In this document: piece by piece, positions 3,171-17,851 of the stretch
Layout of the letters: every line of letters starts with the position of its first letter
Position numbering within the stretch: position 1 is the stretch's first letter
NCBI GenBank assembly: GCA_002794465.1
Contig: MTSL01000126.1
Coordinates: 16,155 to 48,154 of the forward strand
Direction of reading: 5' to 3'
DNA from: Paramicrosporidium saccamoebae KSL3
Taxonomy: Eukaryota; Fungi; Cryptomycota
Length of the DNA: 32,000 bases
Position numbers and translations under genes: made by a program
The notes under the pieces: model-generated
The model's database searches: none
The model's input: only the letters and a program-made list of their open reading frames with translations
What the model was told of the DNA's origin: nothing

Positions 3171-4562
3171 TTACTCATTCAGGATTACAAGACTGGTCTC
3201 GGTGGGACTGGTAATTTCATGATAGACCAGCCAGCCCTCCCACTCGCTGATAAAATGGTTCAAGGTAGCCTTCTCCTCCACCAGGAACAGCCGGGCCAAG
3301 AAGAGACAGGAAAAGGCAGTGACTAGGACCGCAGGCTGCACACCAAACAGTGTCAGTGTCAACAAGGGCGTCAGCTGATCGCCGGGAATAGTGATGGCGG
3401 TAGTGATGGTCAGTGCGACAAAGATGAGAAGCATTAGAACGACAACTGACATGTAGAAACGCTGCCAGCGAATCACATGGAGACGCTTGGTGGCAAAGAT
3501 CTGGAGAGCCTTGTGGACCATTTCCTTTTGCTCCTTGAGGGTGAGGGGATTGGGATCGGCTGAGTATCCAGAGGTGGCAAGTTCGGCAGGATTTATGGAA
3601 AACTCGGCCTTCATAAAGAGATGATCAGAGAGCGACATTTTCGGTTCATATAGCACATCCTCGGTGAGCAGATCAAGCGATTTGCAGACCACACCGGGAC
3701 GGGGTGCGTAGAGGAAATAGTCTATCCGCTGGGACGGATGTTTCTTGATGTAATGGGTGCTGGTAGGCAGGTTATAGGTATGGCCGGTGGATTGCTCAAC
3801 AGCCAAAGCAGCAGTGGGACTGTCTGCCATGCACGCATCAACGCCACGCTGTCCATACAGCTCTGCCCAGGCGTCCTTCAGAGGTGGTTCCAATTTGTTA
3901 CCACAACCACCTGCTACCATCATACGGTAGGGAAAGTCCTCTGGAGTGGTGTTCAGATCGCCAGTCACAATGGCCACGTGTGTTGGACGACTGGTGTGTT
4001 CCACAAACTGCGCCAACTCTTGCAATTGCGCCAGTCGGTGCGCCGTATATCCCAGCTTTTCGGGATTGTATTCGGCGTGCAGATGGGTGGTGTACAGGTC
4101 CAGGGTGACCCCGTTGATCAATACGCGTACTCCACCCACACCCTTTCCGCTAAAATAGTCGCCGTGCCATATACGGTCGATTGAGCCGTTCAGACTGTAC
4201 CGCTTGAAGAAACGCTGTGCAATCGGATGACGTGAAAGGATGCACAGACCGGAGCCAATAACACCGCAGGGAAAGTACACAGTGTGTGGGTAACGGTCCT
4301 TGATGGCCTCCTTCAACCGCATAAAGTCGCTACTCATCCACACCTCCTGCAAGGTGACAAAATCAAACTCGTTGTTCTCCTCCAGCAAGTACCGCTGGAT
4401 TTGTGCAAAACGCGGCTTACGTTTTGGCGAGTACAACAGTCCCCAGCAGTTGAGTGAGGCTATGCGGAAGGTCACATTATCTTCAGTCGTCTGTTTGGGA
4501 GGCATCACCGTCCAGTCGTCCAAACCAGCTCTAACCCCTGTCAGCCAATCACAATAGACCAT
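3171..4562 (-). CDS. ISC1: Neutral sphingomyelinase / inositol phosphosphingolipid phospholipase C (Isc1/SMPD2 family, EEP fold)
   Basis: Motifs SLNCWGL, TLQEVW, SGLCILSRHPI, P-loop-like GDYFSGKGVG, THLHAEY, TGDLN, RIDY, SDH; two C-terminal hydrophobic helices. Start may be ATG 4562 or 4505. Confidence 0.9.
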   Translation of the reverse strand: MVYCDWLTGVRAGLDDWTVMPPKQTTEDNVTFRIASLNCWGLLYSPKRKPRFAQIQRYLLEENNEFDFVTLQEVWMSSDFMRLKEAIKDRYPHTVYFPCGVIGSGLCILSRHPIAQRFFKRYSLNGSIDRIWHGDYFSGKGVGGVRVLINGVTLDLYTTHLHAEYNPEKLGYTAHRLAQLQELAQFVEHTSRPTHVAIVTGDLNTTPEDFPYRMMVAGGCGNKLEPPLKDAWAELYGQRGVDACMADSPTAALAVEQSTGHTYNLPTSTHYIKKHPSQRIDYFLYAPRPGVVCKSLDLLTEDVLYEPKMSLSDHLFMKAEFSINPAELATSGYSADPNPLTLKEQKEMVHKALQIFATKRLHVIRWQRFYMSVVVLMLLIFVALTITTAITIPGDQLTPLLTLTLFGVQPAVLVTAFSCLFLARLFLVEEKATLNHFISEWEGWLVYHEITSPTETSLVILNE

Positions 4563-4681
4563 TTAAGAGTAAGAAGACATAGTCTAACTTTGAGCAAAAC
4601 CAGCAAATGTTGCTAACTGGCAGCAGAACTCTTGTAGTTATGCGAGTACAAATTGGGAGATAGACCAGGACAAAAGCAATC

Positions 4682-4973: not shown

Positions 4974-7900
4974 CCGCAGGACCAGAGTTACTGTTCCATT
5001 TCCGAGATCGGAATCGTCTTGGGCCACAATGCCGTCACTTGGCACATTGCCCAAGGTAAGACCAGTCTTCAGAGCCTTGCACAGGTAGGCCATCTGTCCT
5101 TCCAGGGCGGTGGCCAGGTCGGGATCATTGCTAACTTGGCAATGAATCTGCACCTCATCAGTGGCCTTTAGTCCAGCCTTTTTGCGGAGTCGCTGTACGC
5201 GATTGACTAGTTCGCGAGCAAGACCTTCGTCCCGCAATGTTTGGTCAATGGTAATGTCCAGAAGAACAATAAATTCGCGCTCACATTGGACTGCACGTGT
5301 CGAGTCTGCAGGAAGCTCTACTACACGGACAACCTCCACCTCTTCAAGCGTCAATTCGTGTCCAGCCACTGTCAACTTTCCAGTATCCATGAGGGTACGC
5401 AGATCGCTCTGAGGCACAGTGGCAAGGGCCTTTTGCACCGTAGAAAGATCCTTCTTAAGACGCTGTCCAAGGAGCTTAAAGTTGGGTGTTGCGCGATATT
5501 GTACTCCCCAGGCAGCTTCATCCTCCACCAGCACCAAGGCACGCACATTCAACTCCTCTTCCACATACAGACGCAGTGATTCCAAATCGGCCCGGAAAAT
5601 AGGATCAGTGCTGAGCACTGTAATCTCCCGGAGTGGGGTCTTTAGGGGAATATTCCTTGCCTCGCGCATGGTGCGGACACGCTCAACAACGTCTTGAAGA
5701 CGAGAAAAGGCGCGCTCAATATCTTCGTTAAAGTATTCGTCGCGTACAATGGGATACGACATGAAATGAACACTACGATCATCCACAATCTCTTTTGGCT
5801 GGGTGACATTGTTACGGAGACGTTGGAAGAGATTCTCTGAAAAGAAGGGTGCAAATGGCGCCATGATGATGGAAAAGCTGTACACCACATCAAATAGGAC
5901 ATGGAGGGAAGTATTCAATTCCTCTGCCCCGGCCTCGCCTCTTAATCTGCGACGATTGAAACGAATATACCAGTTGGTAAGCGATTCAATGAATTTCAAA
6001 AGCGGTGGGACCACGGCATACAGTCGGTATGCCGCCATCTCAGCACGAACCGTCTTGATAAGGGTTTGCAACGAGGCCAAGATCCAAGCGTCCATAGTGT
6101 TCTCCCGGTTGTGGATGACGTTCGGATCAAAATTGAAAGGAGCACCCGTCTCGACTTGGAAGACTTCCATCTGGGTGGCCAAGAATCGGTACGAATTGTA
6201 CCAAGGCAGCATCACGTCTCTGATGATATTTCGGACACCTTCTTCGCGAAAGCGTAATGTTTCTGCGCGCACAACGGGGGAATTGATCATATAGAGACGA
6301 AGTGCGTCTGCTCCGTAACCGTCAAATACACTACTTGGTTCGGGATAATTTTTCAAGCGTTTGCTCATCTTCTTACCATCGGCAGCCAACACCAGTCCGT
6401 TGACAATCAAGTTTTTGAACGGAACCCTGTCAAACAGATGAACTCCAATGACCGTCAGAGTGTAGAACCAACCGCGTGTTTGGTCCAGCCCCTCCGCAAT
6501 GAAATCGGCCGGGAAGGATGATTCAAACTTTTCCTTGCTTTCAAATGGATAATGGTTCTGTGCATACGGAACACTGCCACTCTCAAACCAACAATCCAAC
6601 ACTTCCTCCACCCTCTTAAGTACCCCCTTACCTAATTTGGAGGGAATGGTAATGTGATCAACACTCTCTCGGTGCAGATCCGTGATTCCACTCACTCCCG
6701 AAAGCTCTTCAAGTTGCGCCACGGAGCCAATACACACAATCTCTTCAAAATCTTCACTGGCCCAAATGGGAATGGGTGTACCCCAATAACGATTACGGGA
6801 AATGGCCCAGTCGCGTGCCCCTGAGAGCCAATTATGGAAACGCTTCTCTTGCACAAACTCGGGAACCCAGAGCGTCTCTGCACTGGCGGCGAGTAGTCTA
6901 GGGATAATGTCACCAACGCGAACAAACCAGCAAGGAATGGCACGATAGATCAAAGGAGTGTCAGAACGCCAGCAGAAGGGATAGCTGTGGGTAATCTGAC
7001 CTCGATGGAAGATGCGGCCATTGCCGTCAAGTTCTTTAATGATGCCTGGATTAGCCTCTTGCCAAAGTGTCCCTTCATAGCGGGTGATGGGAGCAGTGAA
7101 GCGGCCACTGTCGTCAATGGGACAAGGAACGTCAGTCTCCTTGGTGATGCCATAACGCAAGCAAATGTTAAAATCGTCCTCACCAAATGCCGGTGCCATG
7201 TGTACCAAACCAGTACCGGCATCATTAGTGACAAATGTATCATTGACCACGGAAAAGGTCTTTGGATACTCCGTTTGGCGGCTCTCAAAGAACTCTAGAA
7301 TAGGAACGTATTTGAGACCTTCAAGCTCCTTTCCTGTAACAGTCTTGATAACCTTGTAGCCCTCATGTCCGCCCGACTTCATAACACCCTCGATAAGCGT
7401 CTCGGCAACAATGTAGGTCTTTCCGTCCTTTGGACTTTGGGCATAGCAATACTTCATCTCGGGATGAGCGCAGACGGCCAAATTGGAGGGCAAGGTCCAC
7501 GGGGTGGTTGTCCAGATGAGCAATACAGTGTCCTGGTCATCGACCAAGGGAAGCTTCACCGTTACAGCAGGATCCTGAACATCCCGATAATTAAGGGCCA
7601 CTTCGAAATTGGACAGAGGAGTGCCACAGGCAGTACTGTAGGGCATTACCTTAAATCCGCGGTAAATTTGTCCCTTTGCAAAAAGCTGCTGGAACACCCA
7701 CCAGACGCTCTCCATAAACGAAGGATACATTGTCTTGAAGTCTCCTTGGAAATCAACCCATCGGGCACTGCGACGCACCGTCTTTTCCCATTCTTCGCTG
7801 TACCTCATCACAATAGATCGACATTCTGCATTGTAGGCAGCGATCCCCATTTTCTGAACATCAGCACGGCCTGTGATACCGAGCTTTTTGTCAATTTCGT

Positions 7901-8204
7901 ATTCTATGGGGAGACCATGGCAGTCCCAGCCGAAGCGACGCTCAACGTGAAAGCCATTGAGAGTGGCGTAGCGGGTTACAATATCCTTGATGGCACCGGT
8001 CAATAAATGTCCGTAATGCGGGAGACCAGTAGCAAAGGGAGGTCCATCCAAAAAGGTGTATAATGGACGGCCTTCGGAAAGCTTCAAGCTGGTCTTGAAT
8101 GCATCAATTTCGTCCCAGTATTTCAATATCTTTAGTTCCTCGTTTGGAAAGTCAAACCGGTCGAGATTACTGGCGTCACTGGCCACAGCATTATCAGTAC
8201 TCAT
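4968..8204 (-). CDS. ILS1: Cytoplasmic isoleucyl-tRNA synthetase
   Basis: 1078 aa; DGPPFATGLPHYGH (HIGH), GWDCHGLPIE, editing domain WTTTPWTLP and GTGLVHMAPAFG, WAISRNRYWGTPIP, KMSKR, eukaryote-type C-terminal DEGLARELVNRVQRLRK. Confidence 0.98.
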   Translation of the reverse strand: MSTDNAVASDASNLDRFDFPNEELKILKYWDEIDAFKTSLKLSEGRPLYTFLDGPPFATGLPHYGHLLTGAIKDIVTRYATLNGFHVERRFGWDCHGLPIEYEIDKKLGITGRADVQKMGIAAYNAECRSIVMRYSEEWEKTVRRSARWVDFQGDFKTMYPSFMESVWWVFQQLFAKGQIYRGFKVMPYSTACGTPLSNFEVALNYRDVQDPAVTVKLPLVDDQDTVLLIWTTTPWTLPSNLAVCAHPEMKYCYAQSPKDGKTYIVAETLIEGVMKSGGHEGYKVIKTVTGKELEGLKYVPILEFFESRQTEYPKTFSVVNDTFVTNDAGTGLVHMAPAFGEDDFNICLRYGITKETDVPCPIDDSGRFTAPITRYEGTLWQEANPGIIKELDGNGRIFHRGQITHSYPFCWRSDTPLIYRAIPCWFVRVGDIIPRLLAASAETLWVPEFVQEKRFHNWLSGARDWAISRNRYWGTPIPIWASEDFEEIVCIGSVAQLEELSGVSGITDLHRESVDHITIPSKLGKGVLKRVEEVLDCWFESGSVPYAQNHYPFESKEKFESSFPADFIAEGLDQTRGWFYTLTVIGVHLFDRVPFKNLIVNGLVLAADGKKMSKRLKNYPEPSSVFDGYGADALRLYMINSPVVRAETLRFREEGVRNIIRDVMLPWYNSYRFLATQMEVFQVETGAPFNFDPNVIHNRENTMDAWILASLQTLIKTVRAEMAAYRLYAVVPPLLKFIESLTNWYIRFNRRRLRGEAGAEELNTSLHVLFDVVYSFSIIMAPFAPFFSENLFQRLRNNVTQPKEIVDDRSVHFMSYPIVRDEYFNEDIERAFSRLQDVVERVRTMREARNIPLKTPLREITVLSTDPIFRADLESLRLYVEEELNVRALVLVEDEAAWGVQYRATPNFKLLGQRLKKDLSTVQKALATVPQSDLRTLMDTGKLTVAGHELTLEEVEVVRVVELPADSTRAVQCEREFIVLLDITIDQTLRDEGLARELVNRVQRLRKKAGLKATDEVQIHCQVSNDPDLATALEGQMAYLCKALKTGLTLGNVPSDGIVAQDDSDLGNGTVTLVLRQ

Positions 8205-8256
8205 TACGACAGTGCCAATCGAGATCCCCGGTCGCTAATTATAGGATGCTCCGGGG

Positions 8257-8265
8257 ATGACTCAT
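8257..8265. promoter_or_regulatory. Perfect Gcn4/CpcA (AP-1-type) site ATGACTCAT upstream of IleRS
   Basis: ATGACTCAT lies 53-61 nt upstream of the IleRS ATG (8204); matches the optimal Gcn4 consensus. Function untested. Confidence 0.4.
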
Positions 8266-8610
8266 TTCCCAGGATAGCTGTAGGGACGAGGAGACGACAA
8301 GACAAGGGAATTTATTTATTATTTTTAGCTTATAGTAAAGACCCTTTATTGGTATCCCCGATCCGCAGTTATACTATTTCACAATTATTAACTCATTGAC
8401 CTATTTATCAGTATATTCATCGGCCTATTTAAGCGGCAGCCTCTTCACAATTGATCTATCATAAATAGAAAACCTGCAGACTAATTCACCACCTCACAGA
8501 AACTCGCAGGAGCATCACGGGACAATGCTTTCTAGCATGAAATACTTTTTACTCGTTAACGCTATTTACGCAGGAACTGCCTTGCAAGTGAGAGACTCAC
8601 GATATCTCGA

Positions 8611-9630
8611 TTATAGACCACATTTATCCAGCTTTATCTTTTCGGATGCGTAAACGTCAGGTGGGATTACCGGCTTATACACTGTGGGATCTGCAACCCA
8701 TCGCTCCCACTCGCACTGTCGAACATAGAATAGCATAAAGACATTATCTGAAGCTGCCAAGGCAGCGCTCCGATCGACCTTTGTGACCCCCACGTCATCG
8801 AAATGGTACCAGGTATCACTGGAGGCTTCGGTGCAGACAGTGGCAGCGTAGTGTCCTGACATGGTATGGATCAGTCCCATGAGCATAAAAGTCTCCCCTG
8901 AGACTTGCATGGTATCGCTGTAGATGACGTTAGAGGATTCGCTGCCACCGTCGCTGTCGTTGTCGCGGACCTGAAGCACAAGCATATCTCCCTTCGCAGA
9001 GGTCTTCTTAATAACGGTCGCATCCAGCTGCTCACCCCATTGGGTGAATCCAGCCTGCTCGAAGCGATCAACTGTTGCTTGGTCTGCAGGCTTTGTAATG
9101 TTCATACTCTGTGAGAAGGACGTCTCAGCCAAGGCCTGTTCAACTGATACTCCGGGATCCAGGTACAGGAACAATTGTATGCTGGAAGTCTCCATTTCCA
9201 TCAATGTCTTGTACTCGAGCAGCTGTCCCCCAACCGGCACATATGCTACCCGACTGACCTCGAGTAGAAACATTTTACCCAATATTGGCACCATGTACTC
9301 GACAAGCTTGGTGAAAAAGATGTCCGGGTCCTCCGGACGATCCCACTCTGCTCCGGGTCTATCCTGTTGTTGGGAGTCGGCAATGTAAAGACGATAGAAG
9401 GAGGTAATGGAGACAGCAGTGGAAGAGGTTTGCATTTCAGCAAAGAGCTGCGCAAGGGAGTGAGGGAGCTCACCATCAGAATTGGTGTACACAAGACTGC
9501 GGGCCGGTGGAATATAGAAGAGATTCTGTAAAGCTGTGGTGATGTAGCAGGTGTGGCTCATATTATTAACGAGATTAACTGGTGCGCCGTAAACGGCCGC
9601 GACCACCGCCAACAGCACTACCAGAAACAT
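8611..9630 (-). CDS. Signal-peptide-bearing minimal USP (peptidase C19) deubiquitinase-like protein
   Basis: MFLVVLLAVVAAVYGA signal peptide; Cys box NNMSHTCYITTALQNL; PEDPDIFFTKLVE (QDAxEF-like); His box SGHYAATV and WYHFDDVGV; terminal FMLFYVR strand. Confidence 0.8.
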   Translation of the reverse strand: MFLVVLLAVVAAVYGAPVNLVNNMSHTCYITTALQNLFYIPPARSLVYTNSDGELPHSLAQLFAEMQTSSTAVSITSFYRLYIADSQQQDRPGAEWDRPEDPDIFFTKLVEYMVPILGKMFLLEVSRVAYVPVGGQLLEYKTLMEMETSSIQLFLYLDPGVSVEQALAETSFSQSMNITKPADQATVDRFEQAGFTQWGEQLDATVIKKTSAKGDMLVLQVRDNDSDGGSESSNVIYSDTMQVSGETFMLMGLIHTMSGHYAATVCTEASSDTWYHFDDVGVTKVDRSAALAASDNVFMLFYVRQCEWERWVADPTVYKPVIPPDVYASEKIKLDKCGL

Positions 9631-9957
9631 TAGTTTGTTGCCACTGGCGGACAGTTCGCTTTTTGGACATGATCATTGTGTTTACCATCATAACAGTCAA
9701 ATTTCCTTATTGGTACCAAATGACCCGTCAAGCATCAATAGGTCATTCCGATGCCATCTACCCAAGAAGTGACCGAAAAGTTGTCGAGAGGTTTCTGTCA
9801 AGTAATATTTTCTGTGCCTTTTTGTAAACTTGGGAATACTTTAATTTGATCATATGGGTTAAATTTCTCTCCTTTGTCGCTGCTAGCTATTTTATTAGGA
9901 CACACCGAGATGAACAGAATGCAGTTTACTGTGTTCTAGTTCTAGCACTAGTACTGG

Positions 9958-10761
9958 TTACGCCAGACTTTCAATCAAACTGTCCCGGAACTCTTCCACA
10001 ATAGCCGTAGGCTTGGCATCCTGAATCTTAAAGATACTCTCAATCACTGACAATTCGGTGCTGGTCGTGTCCAGTCCTGTAAAGGCGCACCAGTCGTTTA
10101 CAACCAGCCCAGCCCCAAGCATATCCAAACCACGATTCACGGTTCCAGCAACTAACGGAATCTGCAGCAGAGTTGACAACTCGTCCTGGTCCTCCACACT
10201 GGTCCTTGGGTGCACCAATCCACCCTGATTACTCAGCGCACAGTAAGTGCCGACAAGGACGTTGGTGGCAATGGTGTGGCGAAACACTTCCACCTTGAGC
10301 ACGTCGGCAATAATCTCCTCTGTCTCACGGTCGAGGTCAGGATGTACGAGAGCCACGTAGTCGTTGCAGGCAATGACGTTTCCGAGGGCAGAAAGACGCT
10401 CTTCAACGCGTTGGATGTTCACAGTGTCGGGAATAGAGTTGCGAAGATGCTGCAGCTCCTGGTCGGTGGTCGTGTTGGGCACTAGCAGTCCGTGACGATT
10501 TCCTACACGATATAGAACGTTTAAGCGAGTGTACCGGCTGTCAGACGCCCAATAACACGGGTTCCAGCAATAGATGCATGCACAACGGGAATGACGTCAG
10601 CAAGCTCGCTCTCGAAAACACTGTAAAAGTTTTCTGACCCACCGATAGCAACCAGACAGTACGAGTTGGTGAGCTTGGAGAAGACACCAACGTCATTACT
10701 GTTTTCAAACTGACAACCTACAAAGTTGAGGAAAAGAAGGGGATCCAGTACGTTGCGCCAT
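9958..10761 (-). CDS. TIF6: Eukaryotic translation initiation factor 6; exons 10761-10752, 10717-10535, 10502-9958
   Basis: Spliced product [36 protein letters not shown]...[23 protein letters not shown]...[11 protein letters not shown] is very close to known eIF6; GT-AG introns 10718-10751 (34 nt) and 10503-10534 (32 nt). Confidence 0.97.
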
Positions 10762-10943
10762 CCTGAAGAAGCAAACTTGACAAGGGTATGGATACGGCCG
10801 ACGATCCGAAATAGGAAGGCAGTCGCATTGATATTTTATTGTATTTGGGGGTGGCAAACTAATCAGTCGGCAGTTGTGAGGATAAATTAGTTTGCATCTA
10901 TTACCATGGCAGTTGCGTTATTTACCATATTAAAACAATCGCG

Positions 10944-10965: not shown

Positions 10966-11031
10966 TTTGGGTGTAGCTTTCATGCATTATGCATTCCAAC
11001 CAGGGACCGAGACAAGGACTCATCTGACAAA

Positions 11032-11436
11032 ATGGCTCGCACTAAACAAACAGCACGCAAGTCCACTGGTGGAAAGGCCCCTCGCAAGCAGCTTGCCACA
11101 AAGGCGTCTAAATCAGCTGCGCCTGCCGGCATCAAAAAACCACATCGTTATCGTCCCGGCACGGTCGCTCTTCGCGAGATCCGTCGTTATCAAAAGTCTA
11201 CTGAACTGTTAATTCGCAAGTTGCCGTTTCAGAGACTGGTGAGAGAGGTGGCTGGCGAAACAAAGGGCGATCTGCGGTTCCAAAGCACGGCAGTGGCAGC
11301 ATTGCAGGAGGCCGCCGAGGCTTATCTGGTTGGCCTGTTTGAAGATACCAACCTGTGTGCGATTCATGCAAAACGAGTAACCATCATGGTACGCGACATC
11401 CAACTTGCCCGTCGTTTGCGTGGAGAGAGATCGTAA
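11032..11436 (+). CDS. H3: Histone H3, divergent variant (134 aa)
   Basis: [21 protein letters not shown]...[37 protein letters not shown]...[17 protein letters not shown]; true start ATG 11032 (the track's 10960 start is a TTG extension). Confidence 0.97.
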
Positions 11437-14164: not shown

Positions 14165-17100
14165 TTATTCGGGATAGTCTGAAAGACGGAGGGTAAGCAC
14201 TTTACTCGAATTCTCTTCAGGATCGCGATAGATTCCAACTAGACTATCGGCTTTGGCATACAACGAGCTCTTCAACGAAATTACCAGAAATTGCACTGGA
14301 GATACGGCAATCTCACGAGGACTCGACCCCAACTGCGAAGTATTTGTAACTTGGCCACCAAGGGAACGCGCCCGAATGAATGCAGCAACGCGATGTACAT
14401 TGGCAGCATCCAATGCAGCATCAATCTCGTCGAGGATAAAGAAAGGTGCAGGCCGATACGAATGGATCGCAAATAGGAGCGCCAAGGCTGCAACTGTGCG
14501 CTCACCGCCGGATAACTGATCCATGTCCAGGAATCGTTTCATTGGAGGCATGGCATGGAATCGCACTCCCTCTGAAAATGGCTCTTCGTTATTCTCAACA
14601 CTCAGAAAGGCGCTGCCACCAGTAGGAACTAGATCAGACCGGGTCAGCTCCTTGTAAATGGTGTCAATATTGGACGAAATCTGCTTGAATGCATGATTGA
14701 AGCGATCAAACCGCTTGCTCTTTACCAAAGAAAAGTCTTCCTTGGCCTTTTTCAAATCATTCTTAGTCTTTTCAAATGCTTCCAAGGTGCTCTTCAGACG
14801 GGTCTCTGCGCCGTCAATCTTATCCAACGCGCGCAGATTCGGAGCAAGTTTGTCCATTTCATCCTGGACTGCATTCAACTGTTCAGTGTACTTGCGCTCA
14901 TTGGCAGCATCCAAGGGTGATGCTGTGCGCTTCTGGCGAGGCAGCGAGGAATAGTCAAAGACGATGGGATCACGACTCTGATCAACTTCAAGATCTACAT
15001 CGGCAAATGAGCACTCGGAATTGGCCATGGGGAGATCGACCTGTTCCATTTTACAGGTGCGGAGGAGCACCTTGCGACTTCCAAGTAGACGGTCCAGGTC
15101 ACATTCCTGGTTAGTCAATTCCTTGGAAACAAAAGTCAGGGCTTGCTGGGCAGTTGTAAGGACGGCCCGCTTTTCTTCAACAATTGCCTGCTCAGTCCTT
15201 TTCTTGGTCTTCACTTGGTCAAGTTCGCTCTTTATAGCGGAAGCTTTTTCACGCTTCTCCTCAACCAGATTCATCAAGTTCCTTTGCTCCCTTTCAATCC
15301 CGTCCAGTTCCTGCTGCAGAGCTGTAACCTTTTCCTTTCCCTCAGCAAGACGGCCTGTAGTTTGTGAATGTTGCTCTCTCAAGAACTGAATCTGATGCTG
15401 CAGTTTTGCAGCCACGGTGGCAAATTGAACTCGCTTCTCGGAAATTTCTTGGAAGAGACTCATCCTACTCGTCTCAAATTCCCTTACATTTCCAAATCCA
15501 ATTCTACCACAAAAGTCTGCAAATACCTCATCCTCAACACCGTGGACGGCAACAGTCCAAGTGGCCATTTCCTTTTCATACTTAGCCAGTGATTTGACTA
15601 GAGTGGCCAACTGAGCGCGACAACGGACTAGTTCTTGCTCTACATGCACCAACTCCTCCTGGATGCTCGACAACCGACGATTTTGCGCCTCCAACTCGTC
15701 CAAGAGGTATCGATGACGGGTCTCTAGCTCAACCAAATGCGCACGATTACGTTCCTCCGTCTCGGTTCTTTTCAAGCTCTTGCTAATGTCGGCGAGAGTG
15801 GCGAGACACGAATCACGCTCGCTCTTTAGGGATCGCACTTCACGCTCCTCCCAGCGATGTGATGGCTGGCCATAAACACCACCAGTAATCAATCCGCTCT
15901 TGTGAATGACAGTTCCATCCAAAGTAATTGCCTTTACCTTTACTCCGCGTTCATAGCAAAGACTTTTGGCAATCTGTGTCGAATCGCAGACGGCAGCACT
16001 GCCACAGGCATATCGGAAGGCGCGATCATACATAGAGTCAAAGCGGATCACTTCCATCACTGGACGACATCCATCAATCAACATGGACTTGATATTCTTC
16101 TCGCCGCCCTGGATAGTGTCAAGGGGAATGAACGTGGCCTGTCCAGCTCGTTGTTCTCTTAGGTATTGAATGCAGGCAATAGCCGTTCGTTCTTGATCAA
16201 TAACAATCGCATCGAGATTGCGACCGAGGGCTACCGAGACGGCCGCCTCATATTTTCGATTAGTAGGACGACATAGATCAATCATCCTTCCATGGACACC
16301 AGGAAAGATTCGCTTCAGGGTCTCAATGGTGGTGCACAGCTTAATTTCCCTCTCACTCTCCTGTCTCTCCACTTTGGCCTGCAGCAAGCGGGCCATGATC
16401 CCCCGCAACTTTTCAGTCATTTCAACTTGTGTCTGCTGCATTTTTAACTTGTTTGCCTGGAAAGTGGCAATTTCTCTTTGCATTCCCTCAATCTCGCCTT
16501 CCAGCTTTTCTGATTGCGCGCTTAGCTGGGCATGTTGCTTGTTGATGGCCTGCTCCTCCACTTCCAGACGCCCGCGTGCACCCTCCAATTCGGAAATTTT
16601 GTCTTCAAGTTGGCCCTTTGTCGCCATCTCGGGTGCAATTTTGTGTTCCAATGATTCCAACTTTAGCTTTTCTTTGGCACTGCGTTCTGAGGCCACTACT
16701 CGGAGTTCATTGTATTCGGCAATCAATCCGGGCTTGATGTCAGCTGCCGCAATCTGCTTCAGTGACTGGGCTTCAAACCGCTGTGCTGCTTCTTCGACCT
16801 TGGTGGCCTCGAGTTCAGCGGCCTGTGCTTCTCCCTCTTGTTCAGCTAAATCACTGATGGCACGTTGACAAACTTCGGTTGCAGCAGCCAGACGCTGGCT
16901 AACAAACTTATGACGTTCAGTAAGCTGGGCAGATTTTGGTCCTTCGTCGGTCATTTGTTTCTCTGCCGTCTTTACCTTTTTCTCAATGGCCAACAAATCC
17001 TTCTCTACCTTTGCTTGTTTCTTTTTGGCATCCTTCCAAATGGTCTCGGCTTTTTGAACTGTCAGCTGGGCCTCTTTCAATTCTCCGTCTTTGGCCTCCA

Positions 17101-17851
17101 AGATGGCACCGATCTTGCGGGCTGAATCCTCAACATGAAACAACTTCCACAAATAATGTTCTGCCTTTAGCGCGCGATACTTTTCTTGCATCTTTTCATA
17201 ATTGATGACGTCATCACGCTGCTCCTGAACAAGTCTCAATTCCGCCCCCAATCCGCGTTTGCGATTAAAATTCAATGATGACTCTTCCACTGCCCTGTCC
17301 AAGGCCACCTAACAGTCAGTAATCTCATTTTAGTATACCTTGCAACGATCATATTCCTCGCAGTATTCTTCAGAGCCTGATATTTGCTCAAACAAGCGTG
17401 TCAGCTCTTTGGGGGATTTGCTTGCCATGGCCTCTACATCGCCTTGGAAGACTAGGAAATTTCGTGCCTTGATGAGCACATTTTCGCCCTCCCAAACTCG
17501 AACATACTCTGCATAGGAGACTGTTCGTCCATCTAGACGGTACTCTGACACGCCTGCTGCACTCACTCTACGTCCAAACACCATCTCCACACCGTCCTTT
17601 TCGTATACAGCCTCCACACTTGCAAAGGACGCCTGCATCTCGCCTGACCGGAATATCAGTTCGTTCAACTGTTTTGAGCGGAGAGCTGCAGATTGCACAC
17701 CAAGCACAAAGGACAATGCGTCCATCAGGTTGGACTTGCCGGCACCATTGGGTCCAATGACACTGACAAAGTTGTCGCCAAAGGGACCTATTCGCTGTTT
17801 GCCGTTGTATGATTTAAAATTCTCGACCTCGAGCCGCACAAGTCGTCCCAT
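14165..17851 (-). CDS. SMC1: Cohesin subunit SMC1; exons 17851-17339 and 17308-14165 (~1218 aa)
   Basis: MGRLVRLEVENFKSY, Walker A GPNGAGKSN, NFLVFQGDVE, hinge GVHGRMIDLC / TLDGTVIHKSGLITGG, RFHAMPPMKRF, LSGGE, LDEIDAALD; 30-nt intron 17309-17338 (gtatac...actgac...ttag) joins the two track ORFs in frame. Confidence 0.97.

Follow-up and report, generated by a model that had tools for sequence, protein, structure and literature searches.

Ubiquitin serves host cells as a tag for intracellular invaders, to which bacteria are known to respond by injecting deubiquitinases; could a eukaryotic parasite act on host ubiquitin with an enzyme of its own? This question is raised by a small gene of Paramicrosporidium saccamoebae KSL3, which encodes a ubiquitin-specific protease (USP) of 339 amino acids beginning with a hydrophobic, signal-peptide-like segment. 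The gene lies in the 32,000-nucleotide stretch of DNA analyzed here (the window; positions 16,155 to 48,154 of contig MTSL01000126.1, assembly GCA_002794465.1), and its product was matched residue for residue on that contig. An earlier note on this stretch had proposed a parasite USP repurposed for export into the host, where it would strip ubiquitin. According to the genome paper (accession MTSL00000000), P. saccamoebae is a rozellomycotan and an intranuclear parasite of the amoeba Saccamoeba, with a genome of 7.28 Mb, 46.9% GC and 3,750 gene models. Its hosts are amoebae; humans, animals and crop plants are not infected. Our analysis places the gene in a lineage-specific family of signal-bearing USPs, and the simplest account of this family is that of secreted and surface-displayed deubiquitinases that would meet ubiquitin only outside the parasite, i.e. 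in the host.

Regarding the enzymatic core, the only Pfam domain detected in the 339 amino acids was UCH (PF00443, E=1.6e-12, 48 bits against a cut-off of 23.9). The oxyanion Asn23 lies at C-5 relative to the catalytic Cys28, and the Cys box and the SGHY motif align to the Cys box and the His box of yeast Ubp6 (PDB 1vjv), while in a profile of the whole family the Cys box, the GHY of the His box and a W-x-x-x-D-D motif align to the Cys box, GHY and W..FDD of USP7. When this profile was compared with solved structures (best 60 of 112 matches at E<=0.001 listed), the USP7 catalytic-domain chains scored E=3.5e-30, the match beginning with the strand that precedes the Cys box and reaching to the end of the post-core helix; the region of residues 305–339 was aligned to the helix that follows the USP7 catalytic core. 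An AlphaFold2 model built from a 19-sequence family alignment (mean predicted local distance difference test score, pLDDT, 84.9; predicted template modelling score, pTM, 0.81) showed an N-terminal helix at residues 2–15, a mixed helix/strand core and short helices at 305–313, 315–318 and 324–330, followed by nine disordered residues (331–339, pLDDT <50). Comparison of the model with the PDB by Foldseek gave 299 matches at E<=0.001, of which USP catalytic domains fill the best 50; those of USP7 were at the top (E ~7e-16, template modelling score ~0.6, 15–19% identity), followed by USP35, USP12 and USP30. Cys occurs only at positions 28, 266, 306 and 337, so that there is no CxxC zinc ribbon, and the conserved USP positions Q35, D101, H260, D279 and Y302 are kept. 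The protein is thus almost certainly a USP of family C19 with a complete triad, as placed by alignment, and a fingers-palm-thumb fold. These results agree with the earlier note in that it had described a compact USP core with catalytic Asn, Cys, His and Asp, no accessory domains and no zinc-binding Cys in the fingers, and the comparison with USP structures that it had suggested recovered the USP fold with USP7 as the best match. On the other hand, its suggestion that the divergent MSHTC box could mean altered specificity, e.g. for a ubiquitin-like modifier, was not borne out: the box is variable across the family (N-x-G/S-x-x-C-Y/F, with Asn at C-5 kept in the window protein), the USP positions are kept, and two paralogues carry a ubiquitin-interacting motif (UIM), which points to ubiquitin itself as the substrate.

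The closest orthologue was found on a JGI metagenome contig (L001), where the same gene lies between those of eIF6 and isoleucyl-tRNA synthetase (IleRS). The encoded protein, P0002, has 75% identity with the window protein and the same start, the same residue at 14 of the 16 positions of the hydrophobic N-terminus and all catalytic motifs. The ratio of nonsynonymous to synonymous substitution rates (dN/dS, Nei-Gojobori) between the two was 0.19, uniformly along the gene, with dS ~0.73; the USP gene is real and under purifying selection. The motif residues are conserved in P0002 as well as in P0003, the positional orthologue on contig L003 of a more distant relative.

The N-terminal segment MFLVVLLAVVAAVYGA consists of 16 uncharged residues (mean Kyte-Doolittle hydrophobicity 2.66) and ends 12 residues before Cys28; the sequence that follows, PVNLVNNMSH, contains no basic residue. 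The earlier description of a clean signal peptide, cleaved before Pro17, holds for the hydrophobic N-terminus, which is real and family-wide. It does not hold for the site, because Tyr at −3 and Pro at +1 make cleavage directly before Pro17 unlikely under the −3/−1 rule; cleavage after Gly15, VYG/A (around Gly15/Ala16), is plausible and fits better. An uncharged hydrophobic run of 8–20 residues, typically 14–16, ending 11–34 residues before the catalytic Cys was present in 21 of the 21 family N-termini tabulated. Many of them have a basic n-region (MK, MAKR, MNR, MIK, MR, MKAK) and a small-residue c-region; most relatives carry basic residues before the run, and several have one just after it. 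Further complete N-termini read by eye (P0026, P0030 and P0049) also start with a hydrophobic segment, and relatives with odd or missing starts (P0013, the neighbour on contig L008 and P0062) regain a signal peptide when the open reading frame (ORF) is read properly. The N-terminus therefore looks like a conserved feature of the family resembling a cleavable signal peptide, and we think it likely that the window protein enters the secretory pathway. At the other end of the protein, KLDKCGL was inspected by eye as a CaaX motif, a type 1 peroxisomal targeting signal (PTS1) or an ER (endoplasmic reticulum)-retention signal, and none fits (Cys at −3, not −4; Gly at −2).

A different explanation would be a wrong gene model, one that lacks an upstream exon or whose true start lies downstream, in which case the segment would not be the N-terminus of the protein. 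The genome does have introns, two of them in the neighbouring eIF6 gene, and the 5' ends are wrong in the models of PSACC_03620, PSACC_03621, an 812-amino-acid fusion and eIF6. Nevertheless, this explanation is highly improbable in view of the locus itself. In-frame stops lie 16 codons 5' of the ATG, and an indel of 2 nucleotides (nt) between the window and L001, 22 nt upstream of the ATG, argues against an extension of the coding frame common to both. M24 is the next Met in frame, and M1 is the only sensible start because a start at M24 would remove the oxyanion Asn23; it would also delete the strand before the Cys box. The intron signature of this genome, as seen in eIF6 (GTAC...GTAG, 32–34 nt), was found by inspection neither upstream of nor inside the USP ORF, so the earlier statement that the gene has no intron stands for the ORF itself, and an upstream exon is argued against by the indel and by the missing signature. 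In addition, the same ATG and hydrophobic start are present in P0002, and equivalent starts were called independently, in different assemblies, for P0003 and over 20 relatives. Two mini-intron candidates were considered. Splicing at a GT...AG pair of 25–27 nt shortly before the ATG would extend both orthologues in frame, by MIIGNKL in the window and by MMIGNKL in L001; this candidate was not adopted because it is unlike the 32–34-nt GTAC...GTAG introns of the genome, and even a genuine intron at this site would do no more than supply an n-region containing Lys, which would bring the signal closer to the canonical form. The second candidate, ATGATG/GTAAAC ... CTGGTAG/TG, was rejected as out of frame.

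The extent of the family came to light through an exhaustive HMMER search, in which 1.84 billion representative proteins were scanned with the window protein and 59 matches at E<=0.001 were obtained. A word-indexed search with the single protein had returned only itself and one orthologue, and when the 19-sequence family alignment was used in the same way, words common to USPs in general dominated and four proteins were obtained. The best full-length HMMER matches are 20–32% identical to the window protein and form a distinct, lineage-specific family of ~30 members, nearly every complete sequence having the short hydrophobic segment before the Cys box. All named members are from P. saccamoebae (PSACC_03621, PSACC_03620 and PSACC_02893), the others having been recovered from environmental assemblies of JGI, ENA and Logan; the exhaustive search with the window protein gave no named relative from any organism other than P. 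saccamoebae. The four environmental contigs examined are all gene-dense and eukaryotic, and three of them are syntenic with P. saccamoebae.

The count of signal-peptide USP paralogues that had been called for gave at least five signal-bearing USP genes in the P. saccamoebae genome, namely the window gene and two tandem pairs (22–28% identical to the window protein; 55% and 31% within the two pairs). Tandem copies also occur on other contigs, and P0012, P0026 and P0036 lie together on one 18-kb contig. In the first pair, the true start of PSACC_03620 is 28 codons upstream, MKLFLFLLSCTAVWCAQ; the gene was annotated from an internal Met and its signal peptide was lost, and PSACC_03621 starts probably at Met11. 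In the second, an 812-amino-acid model on contig L008 (MTSL01000179.1, 1269–4575) is probably a fusion, whose 3' part (3319–4575) is a free-standing signal-peptide USP beside PSACC_02893. Several gene models in the P. saccamoebae assembly thus hide such signals through wrong start codons. On the same contig, an Arg/Ser-rich protein with a CCHC zinc-knuckle-like stretch is encoded at ~821–1378 and resembles an RRM/zf-CCHC gene at the same position in contig L007.

The window protein is the minimal form of the family, signal and core, and other members carry additions at the C-terminus. PSACC_03621 and PSACC_03620 have long low-complexity tails ending in DEDIRAAIALSLAQF and DDDLAMALAMSMMDF, respectively, both of which fit the UIM pattern. 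In P0008, P0011, P0014 and P0026, an added stalk of low complexity, either Ser/Thr/Pro-rich or charged, comes before a C-terminal transmembrane helix that carries a short basic tail, and P0049 and the second USP of L003 (L003:4464–5834, with YTPS repeats) end in a hydrophobic segment. We read these stalked and anchored relatives as having a type I or glycosylphosphatidylinositol (GPI)-like surface layout that would place the USP domain outside. A bona fide example of a signal in this genome is provided by the p24 protein encoded in the window, whose family comprises classical type I cargo receptors: behind its signal peptide, MLVKRLLSAAVLLATANA/K, come a transmembrane helix and a basic tail, and the anchored USP relatives share this signal/transmembrane/basic-tail layout. 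In P0026, P0047 and P0049 the catalytic Cys is lost (SYSY instead of xCY, or a degenerate Cys box); the Cys-less copies keep the signal and the C-terminal transmembrane helix and are probably pseudo-deubiquitinases.

A further explanation would be that the protein enters the secretory pathway and is retained by the parasite, in the spore wall, the polar-filament apparatus, the ER/Golgi or at the surface, where host ubiquitin would not be involved and the protein would process some other substrate or serve in structure or binding. The signal-peptide features of the N-terminus suit this explanation equally, many signal-peptide proteins of spore-forming parasites are spore components, and the upkeep of Cys-less members suggests a non-catalytic role for part of the family. 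However, purifying selection has preserved the full triad, the oxyanion Asn and the conserved USP boxes in the window protein and its orthologues, the UIM tails of the paralogues point to ubiquitin binding, and we know of no substrate other than ubiquitin-like ones for the USP fold. Retention with an unrelated role is accordingly quite improbable.

How the family came about can be read from gene order. On the contigs of the more distant relative (L003 and L004), the order H3 - eIF6 - USP - USP - IleRS - phosphatase is kept, and the proteins encoded there differ greatly in conservation (identity between the window and L003: 29% for USP and its positional orthologue P0003, 74% for IleRS, 93% for eIF6, 91% for histone H3 and 61% for the phosphatase). 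Likewise, PSACC_02893 and P0030 occupy a conserved position on contigs L007 and L008 and are 28% identical. The conserved positions together with the low identities indicate that the family is old in the lineage, vertically inherited and tandem-amplified, and that it diverges far faster than its surroundings. Recent acquisition from a host or another foreign source was rejected as far as it could be checked: base composition, GC and GC at third codon positions (GC3) are like those of the neighbouring genes, the position is conserved in two relatives, and there is no closer relative outside the family. On the question of a native or a host-derived gene, the evidence favours a native one, and of the proposal of a repurposed parasite USP, the parasite gene stands while the family is better described as an old and expanded lineage-specific one, neither recent nor host-derived.

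We propose the following mechanism. The hydrophobic N-terminus would take the nascent protein into the parasite ER, where cleavage around Gly15/Ala16 would give a mature enzyme of ~36 kDa that would leave the parasite by the secretory route. Because the parasite grows inside the host nucleus, the enzyme would end in the host nucleoplasm or cytoplasm, which would be the only nearby compartment with ubiquitin conjugates, and would there remove ubiquitin from host-made conjugates, on the parasite surface or on host proteins. The membrane-anchored paralogues would act in the same way, tethered to the parasite surface. Translocation, cleavage, export, enzymatic activity, ubiquitin as the substrate and the host as the target are steps that we infer, and to the mechanism as a whole, a catalytically competent USP that is exported and acts on host ubiquitin, we give about an even chance. 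This host-exposed reading was reached because of the signal-like N-terminus, the type I/GPI-like relatives, the UIM tails, the tandem amplification, the pseudo-enzymes, the rapid divergence and the intranuclear lifestyle, and the comparative part of this evidence (paralogues, anchored and UIM-tailed relatives, duplication, pseudo-enzymes and fast divergence) strengthens it.

Several points weigh against export to the host. First, N-terminal hydrophobic anchors directly before a USP core, with the USP domain in the cytosol, are known in USP30, Ubp16 and Ubp1. Second, the signal of the window protein lacks both a basic n-region and a clearly polar c-region, and is among the less canonical ones in the family. 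Third, the UIM tails support ubiquitin as a substrate and do not discriminate between topologies, as they suit a cytosolic enzyme equally. Fourth, a C-terminal transmembrane helix with a basic tail can also be a mitochondrial or peroxisomal tail anchor, and the type I reading is therefore not unique. Fifth, Asn23 lies within an N-x-S sequon in both orthologues (window and P0002), which would be awkward if the protein were N-glycosylated in the ER. Finally, the two closest orthologues, with their dN/dS of 0.19, give no sign of positive selection.

The first four of these points at the same time favour the main rival explanation, in which the N-terminus would be an uncleaved membrane anchor (mitochondrial outer membrane as in USP30 and Ubp16, or ER as in Ubp1) and the enzyme would work in the parasite cytosol on the parasite's own conjugates. 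The parasite has its own ubiquitin machinery, with a cullin and a ZNF598-type RING protein encoded in the window, and the basic residue found just after the hydrophobic run in several relatives would suit an anchor as well. We nevertheless regard an anchor as unlikely. At the typical length given above, and at 16 residues in the window protein, most of the runs are too short for a stable membrane span, and the basic residues before the run in most relatives favour translocation of the C-terminal side; judged by a heuristic on the sequence only, the window protein does not have the span of ~20 residues with basic residues on the catalytic side that would be expected. No special similarity to USP30 was observed either, since USP7 was best by both profile and fold, and USP30 ranked 36th by fold and was absent from the best 60 of the 112 profile matches; for Ubp16 and Ubp1 we know of no solved structure with which the fold could be compared. 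Moreover, tandem amplification, loss of the catalytic Cys and an identity of 29% next to neighbours at 61–93% are unexpected for housekeeping anchored USPs, and published topology predictions for analogous microsporidian UCH proteins place the domain outside.

The features of the USP gene, together with the tandem pair carrying UIM tails, are summarized in Table 1.

Table 1. Positions of the USP gene, its motifs and flanking blocks in the window, and of one tandem pair of paralogues
Feature	Position	Strand	Basis
Complete coding sequence, signal-peptide USP-family deubiquitinase (putative)	8611..9630	(-)	ATG start, 339 codons + stop; Pfam UCH; dN/dS
Signal-peptide-like N-terminus MFLVVLLAVVAAVYGA, codons 1-16	9583..9630	(-)	Hydrophobicity; 14/16 conserved in P0002; family-wide equivalent
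Cys box NNMSHTCY, residues 22-29, oxyanion Asn23 and Cys28	9544..9567	(-)	Motif positions; aligns to Ubp6 Cys box
His box SGHY, residues 258-261, catalytic His260	8848..8859	(-)	Invariant in family alignment; aligns to Ubp6 His box
WYHFDD, residues 274-279, third triad residue Asp278, then invariant Asp279	8794..8811	(-)	Family alignment, USP7 alignment
Post-core C-terminal helices, residues 305-339	8614..8718	(-)	AlphaFold2 model; family motif W...Y.P.IP
Conserved non-coding block directly upstream of ATG	9631..9740	(-)	~110 nt, ~90% identity to L001 (L001 290-397)
Conserved block directly after stop codon	8537..8610	(-)	~75 nt, alignment with L001 downstream sequence
PSACC_03620/PSACC_03621 tandem genes	L005 (MTSL01000213.1) 8068-9828 and 6001-7611		ORF reading

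The intergenic DNA of the window can be aligned to L001 only in blocks adjoining genes, the middle parts being not alignable. The block upstream of the USP ATG contains a CCAAT-like motif, several upstream ATGs and a 35-mer identical in L001, and between these two closest species it is conserved more than the synonymous sites of the USP gene. It was not found in the more distant L003, whose USP promoters carry ATTGG (reverse CCAAT) motifs instead. This block is probably a promoter or a 5' untranslated region (UTR), and the one after the stop codon is probably a 3' UTR or polyadenylation region. A known RNA was considered for the upstream block and rejected, as neither an Rfam family nor a tRNA was detected in the whole window and the block is absent from L003.

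By the annotation of the window, the neighbours of the USP gene are ordinary eukaryotic housekeeping genes. They encode an ankyrin-repeat protein kinase, an Exo_endo_phos phosphatase, isoleucyl-tRNA synthetase, eIF6, histone H3, NOB1, an Oxa1-like insertase, an SMC protein, a ZNF598-like RING protein, the p24 cargo receptor, a Sof1-like WD40 protein, a cullin and a myosin II heavy chain. In the eIF6 gene (9958–10761, minus strand) we observed two tiny introns of 34 nt (10751–10718) and 32 nt (10534–10503), both GTAC...GTAG; with both removed, a canonical protein of 245 amino acids is obtained, starting with MAQRCQFENS at 10761. The public model has 252 amino acids and starts at 10828, and its first exon is probably wrong. 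The histone H3 encoded at 11029–11436 (plus strand) has a tail that is divergent around the K27/K36 region, where it is two residues shorter than what we take to be the canonical H3 sequence. The SMC gene (14165–17851, minus strand; model of 1,190 amino acids) is split over two ORFs, 14165–17308 and 17330–17851, from which it follows that the two are separated by either a short intron or a frame change.

Looking beyond the single protein, we can tentatively picture an arsenal of USP7-like deubiquitinases that Paramicrosporidium and its uncultured relatives would deliver via the classical secretory route: soluble forms, the window protein among them, passing into the host nucleus, UIM-tailed forms docking on ubiquitin chains, and stalked, anchored forms covering the surface of the parasite and removing the ubiquitin that the host puts there, as a 'ubiquitin eraser shield'. 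If true, an effector family of the USP fold would for the first time have been shown to move from one eukaryote to another, as a eukaryotic counterpart of the bacterial deubiquitinase effectors. To our knowledge, the effectors of microsporidia and their rozellid relatives are almost entirely uncharacterized, and in a conserved, expanded family that comes in soluble, UIM-tailed and surface-anchored versions one would have a concrete, testable means by which such parasites could escape ubiquitin-based defence or rewrite the ubiquitin marks of the host nucleus. The window enzyme, being small and intron-free with a recognizable active site, is readily tractable. The P. saccamoebae genome paper makes no mention of ubiquitin, secretion or effectors, and a literature search for secreted deubiquitinases of Rozellomycota found none.

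Among known enzymes, the core is most like that of USP7/HAUSP (yeast Ubp15), the best match by profile and fold, with which it shares the order of Cys, His and Asp, the oxyanion Asn, the lack of the four zinc Cys and the post-core helix. Unlike USP7, to which it is only 15–19% identical, the window protein has no MATH/TRAF and UBL domains and carries the signal-like N-terminus in their place; since these domains are absent, it has a USP7-like core and is not a USP7 orthologue. USP30, Ubp16 and Ubp1 share with it a hydrophobic N-terminal segment immediately before the USP core. Their segments, however, are full-length transmembrane helices, the enzymes are cytosolic and the genes are conserved housekeeping genes, whereas the segments here are shorter, are often preceded by basic residues and belong to a fast-evolving amplified family.

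The nearest precedent lies in a related parasite group. Reinke et al. (2017, PMC5423893), who also identified host-exposed proteins of Nematocida experimentally, found UCH among the most frequent known domains in the predicted host-exposed proteins of 23 microsporidian genomes, and their table gives the predicted topologies i12-30o282-304i for a UCH protein of Anncaliia algerae (KCZ80175.1) and i12-31o for one of Edhazardia aedis (EJW03922.1). The window family matches the genomic signature of that study, and the microsporidian proteins resemble it in being clade-specific and in having an N-terminal targeting segment before UCH, one of them with a C-terminal transmembrane helix; they are known from the computational list only, none having been characterized, and the likeness is by description, not by sequence. 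The idea is thus not wholly new, because UCH proteins had already been listed there as predicted host-exposed; what appears to be new here is that a core like that of USP7 has become, in Rozellomycota, a lineage-specific family whose members bear a signal.

In concept, the proposal resembles the deubiquitinase effectors of bacteria, by which an intracellular pathogen delivers a ubiquitin-cleaving cysteine protease to its host. Examples are the CE-clan enzymes ChlaDub1 and SseL, the OTU-type Lot proteins of Legionella and the USP-like TssM of Burkholderia. Unlike these, which leave through bacterial secretion systems and mostly have other folds, the candidate described here is a eukaryotic USP that would travel via the classical ER route, from a parasite in direct or near-direct contact with the host nucleoplasm.

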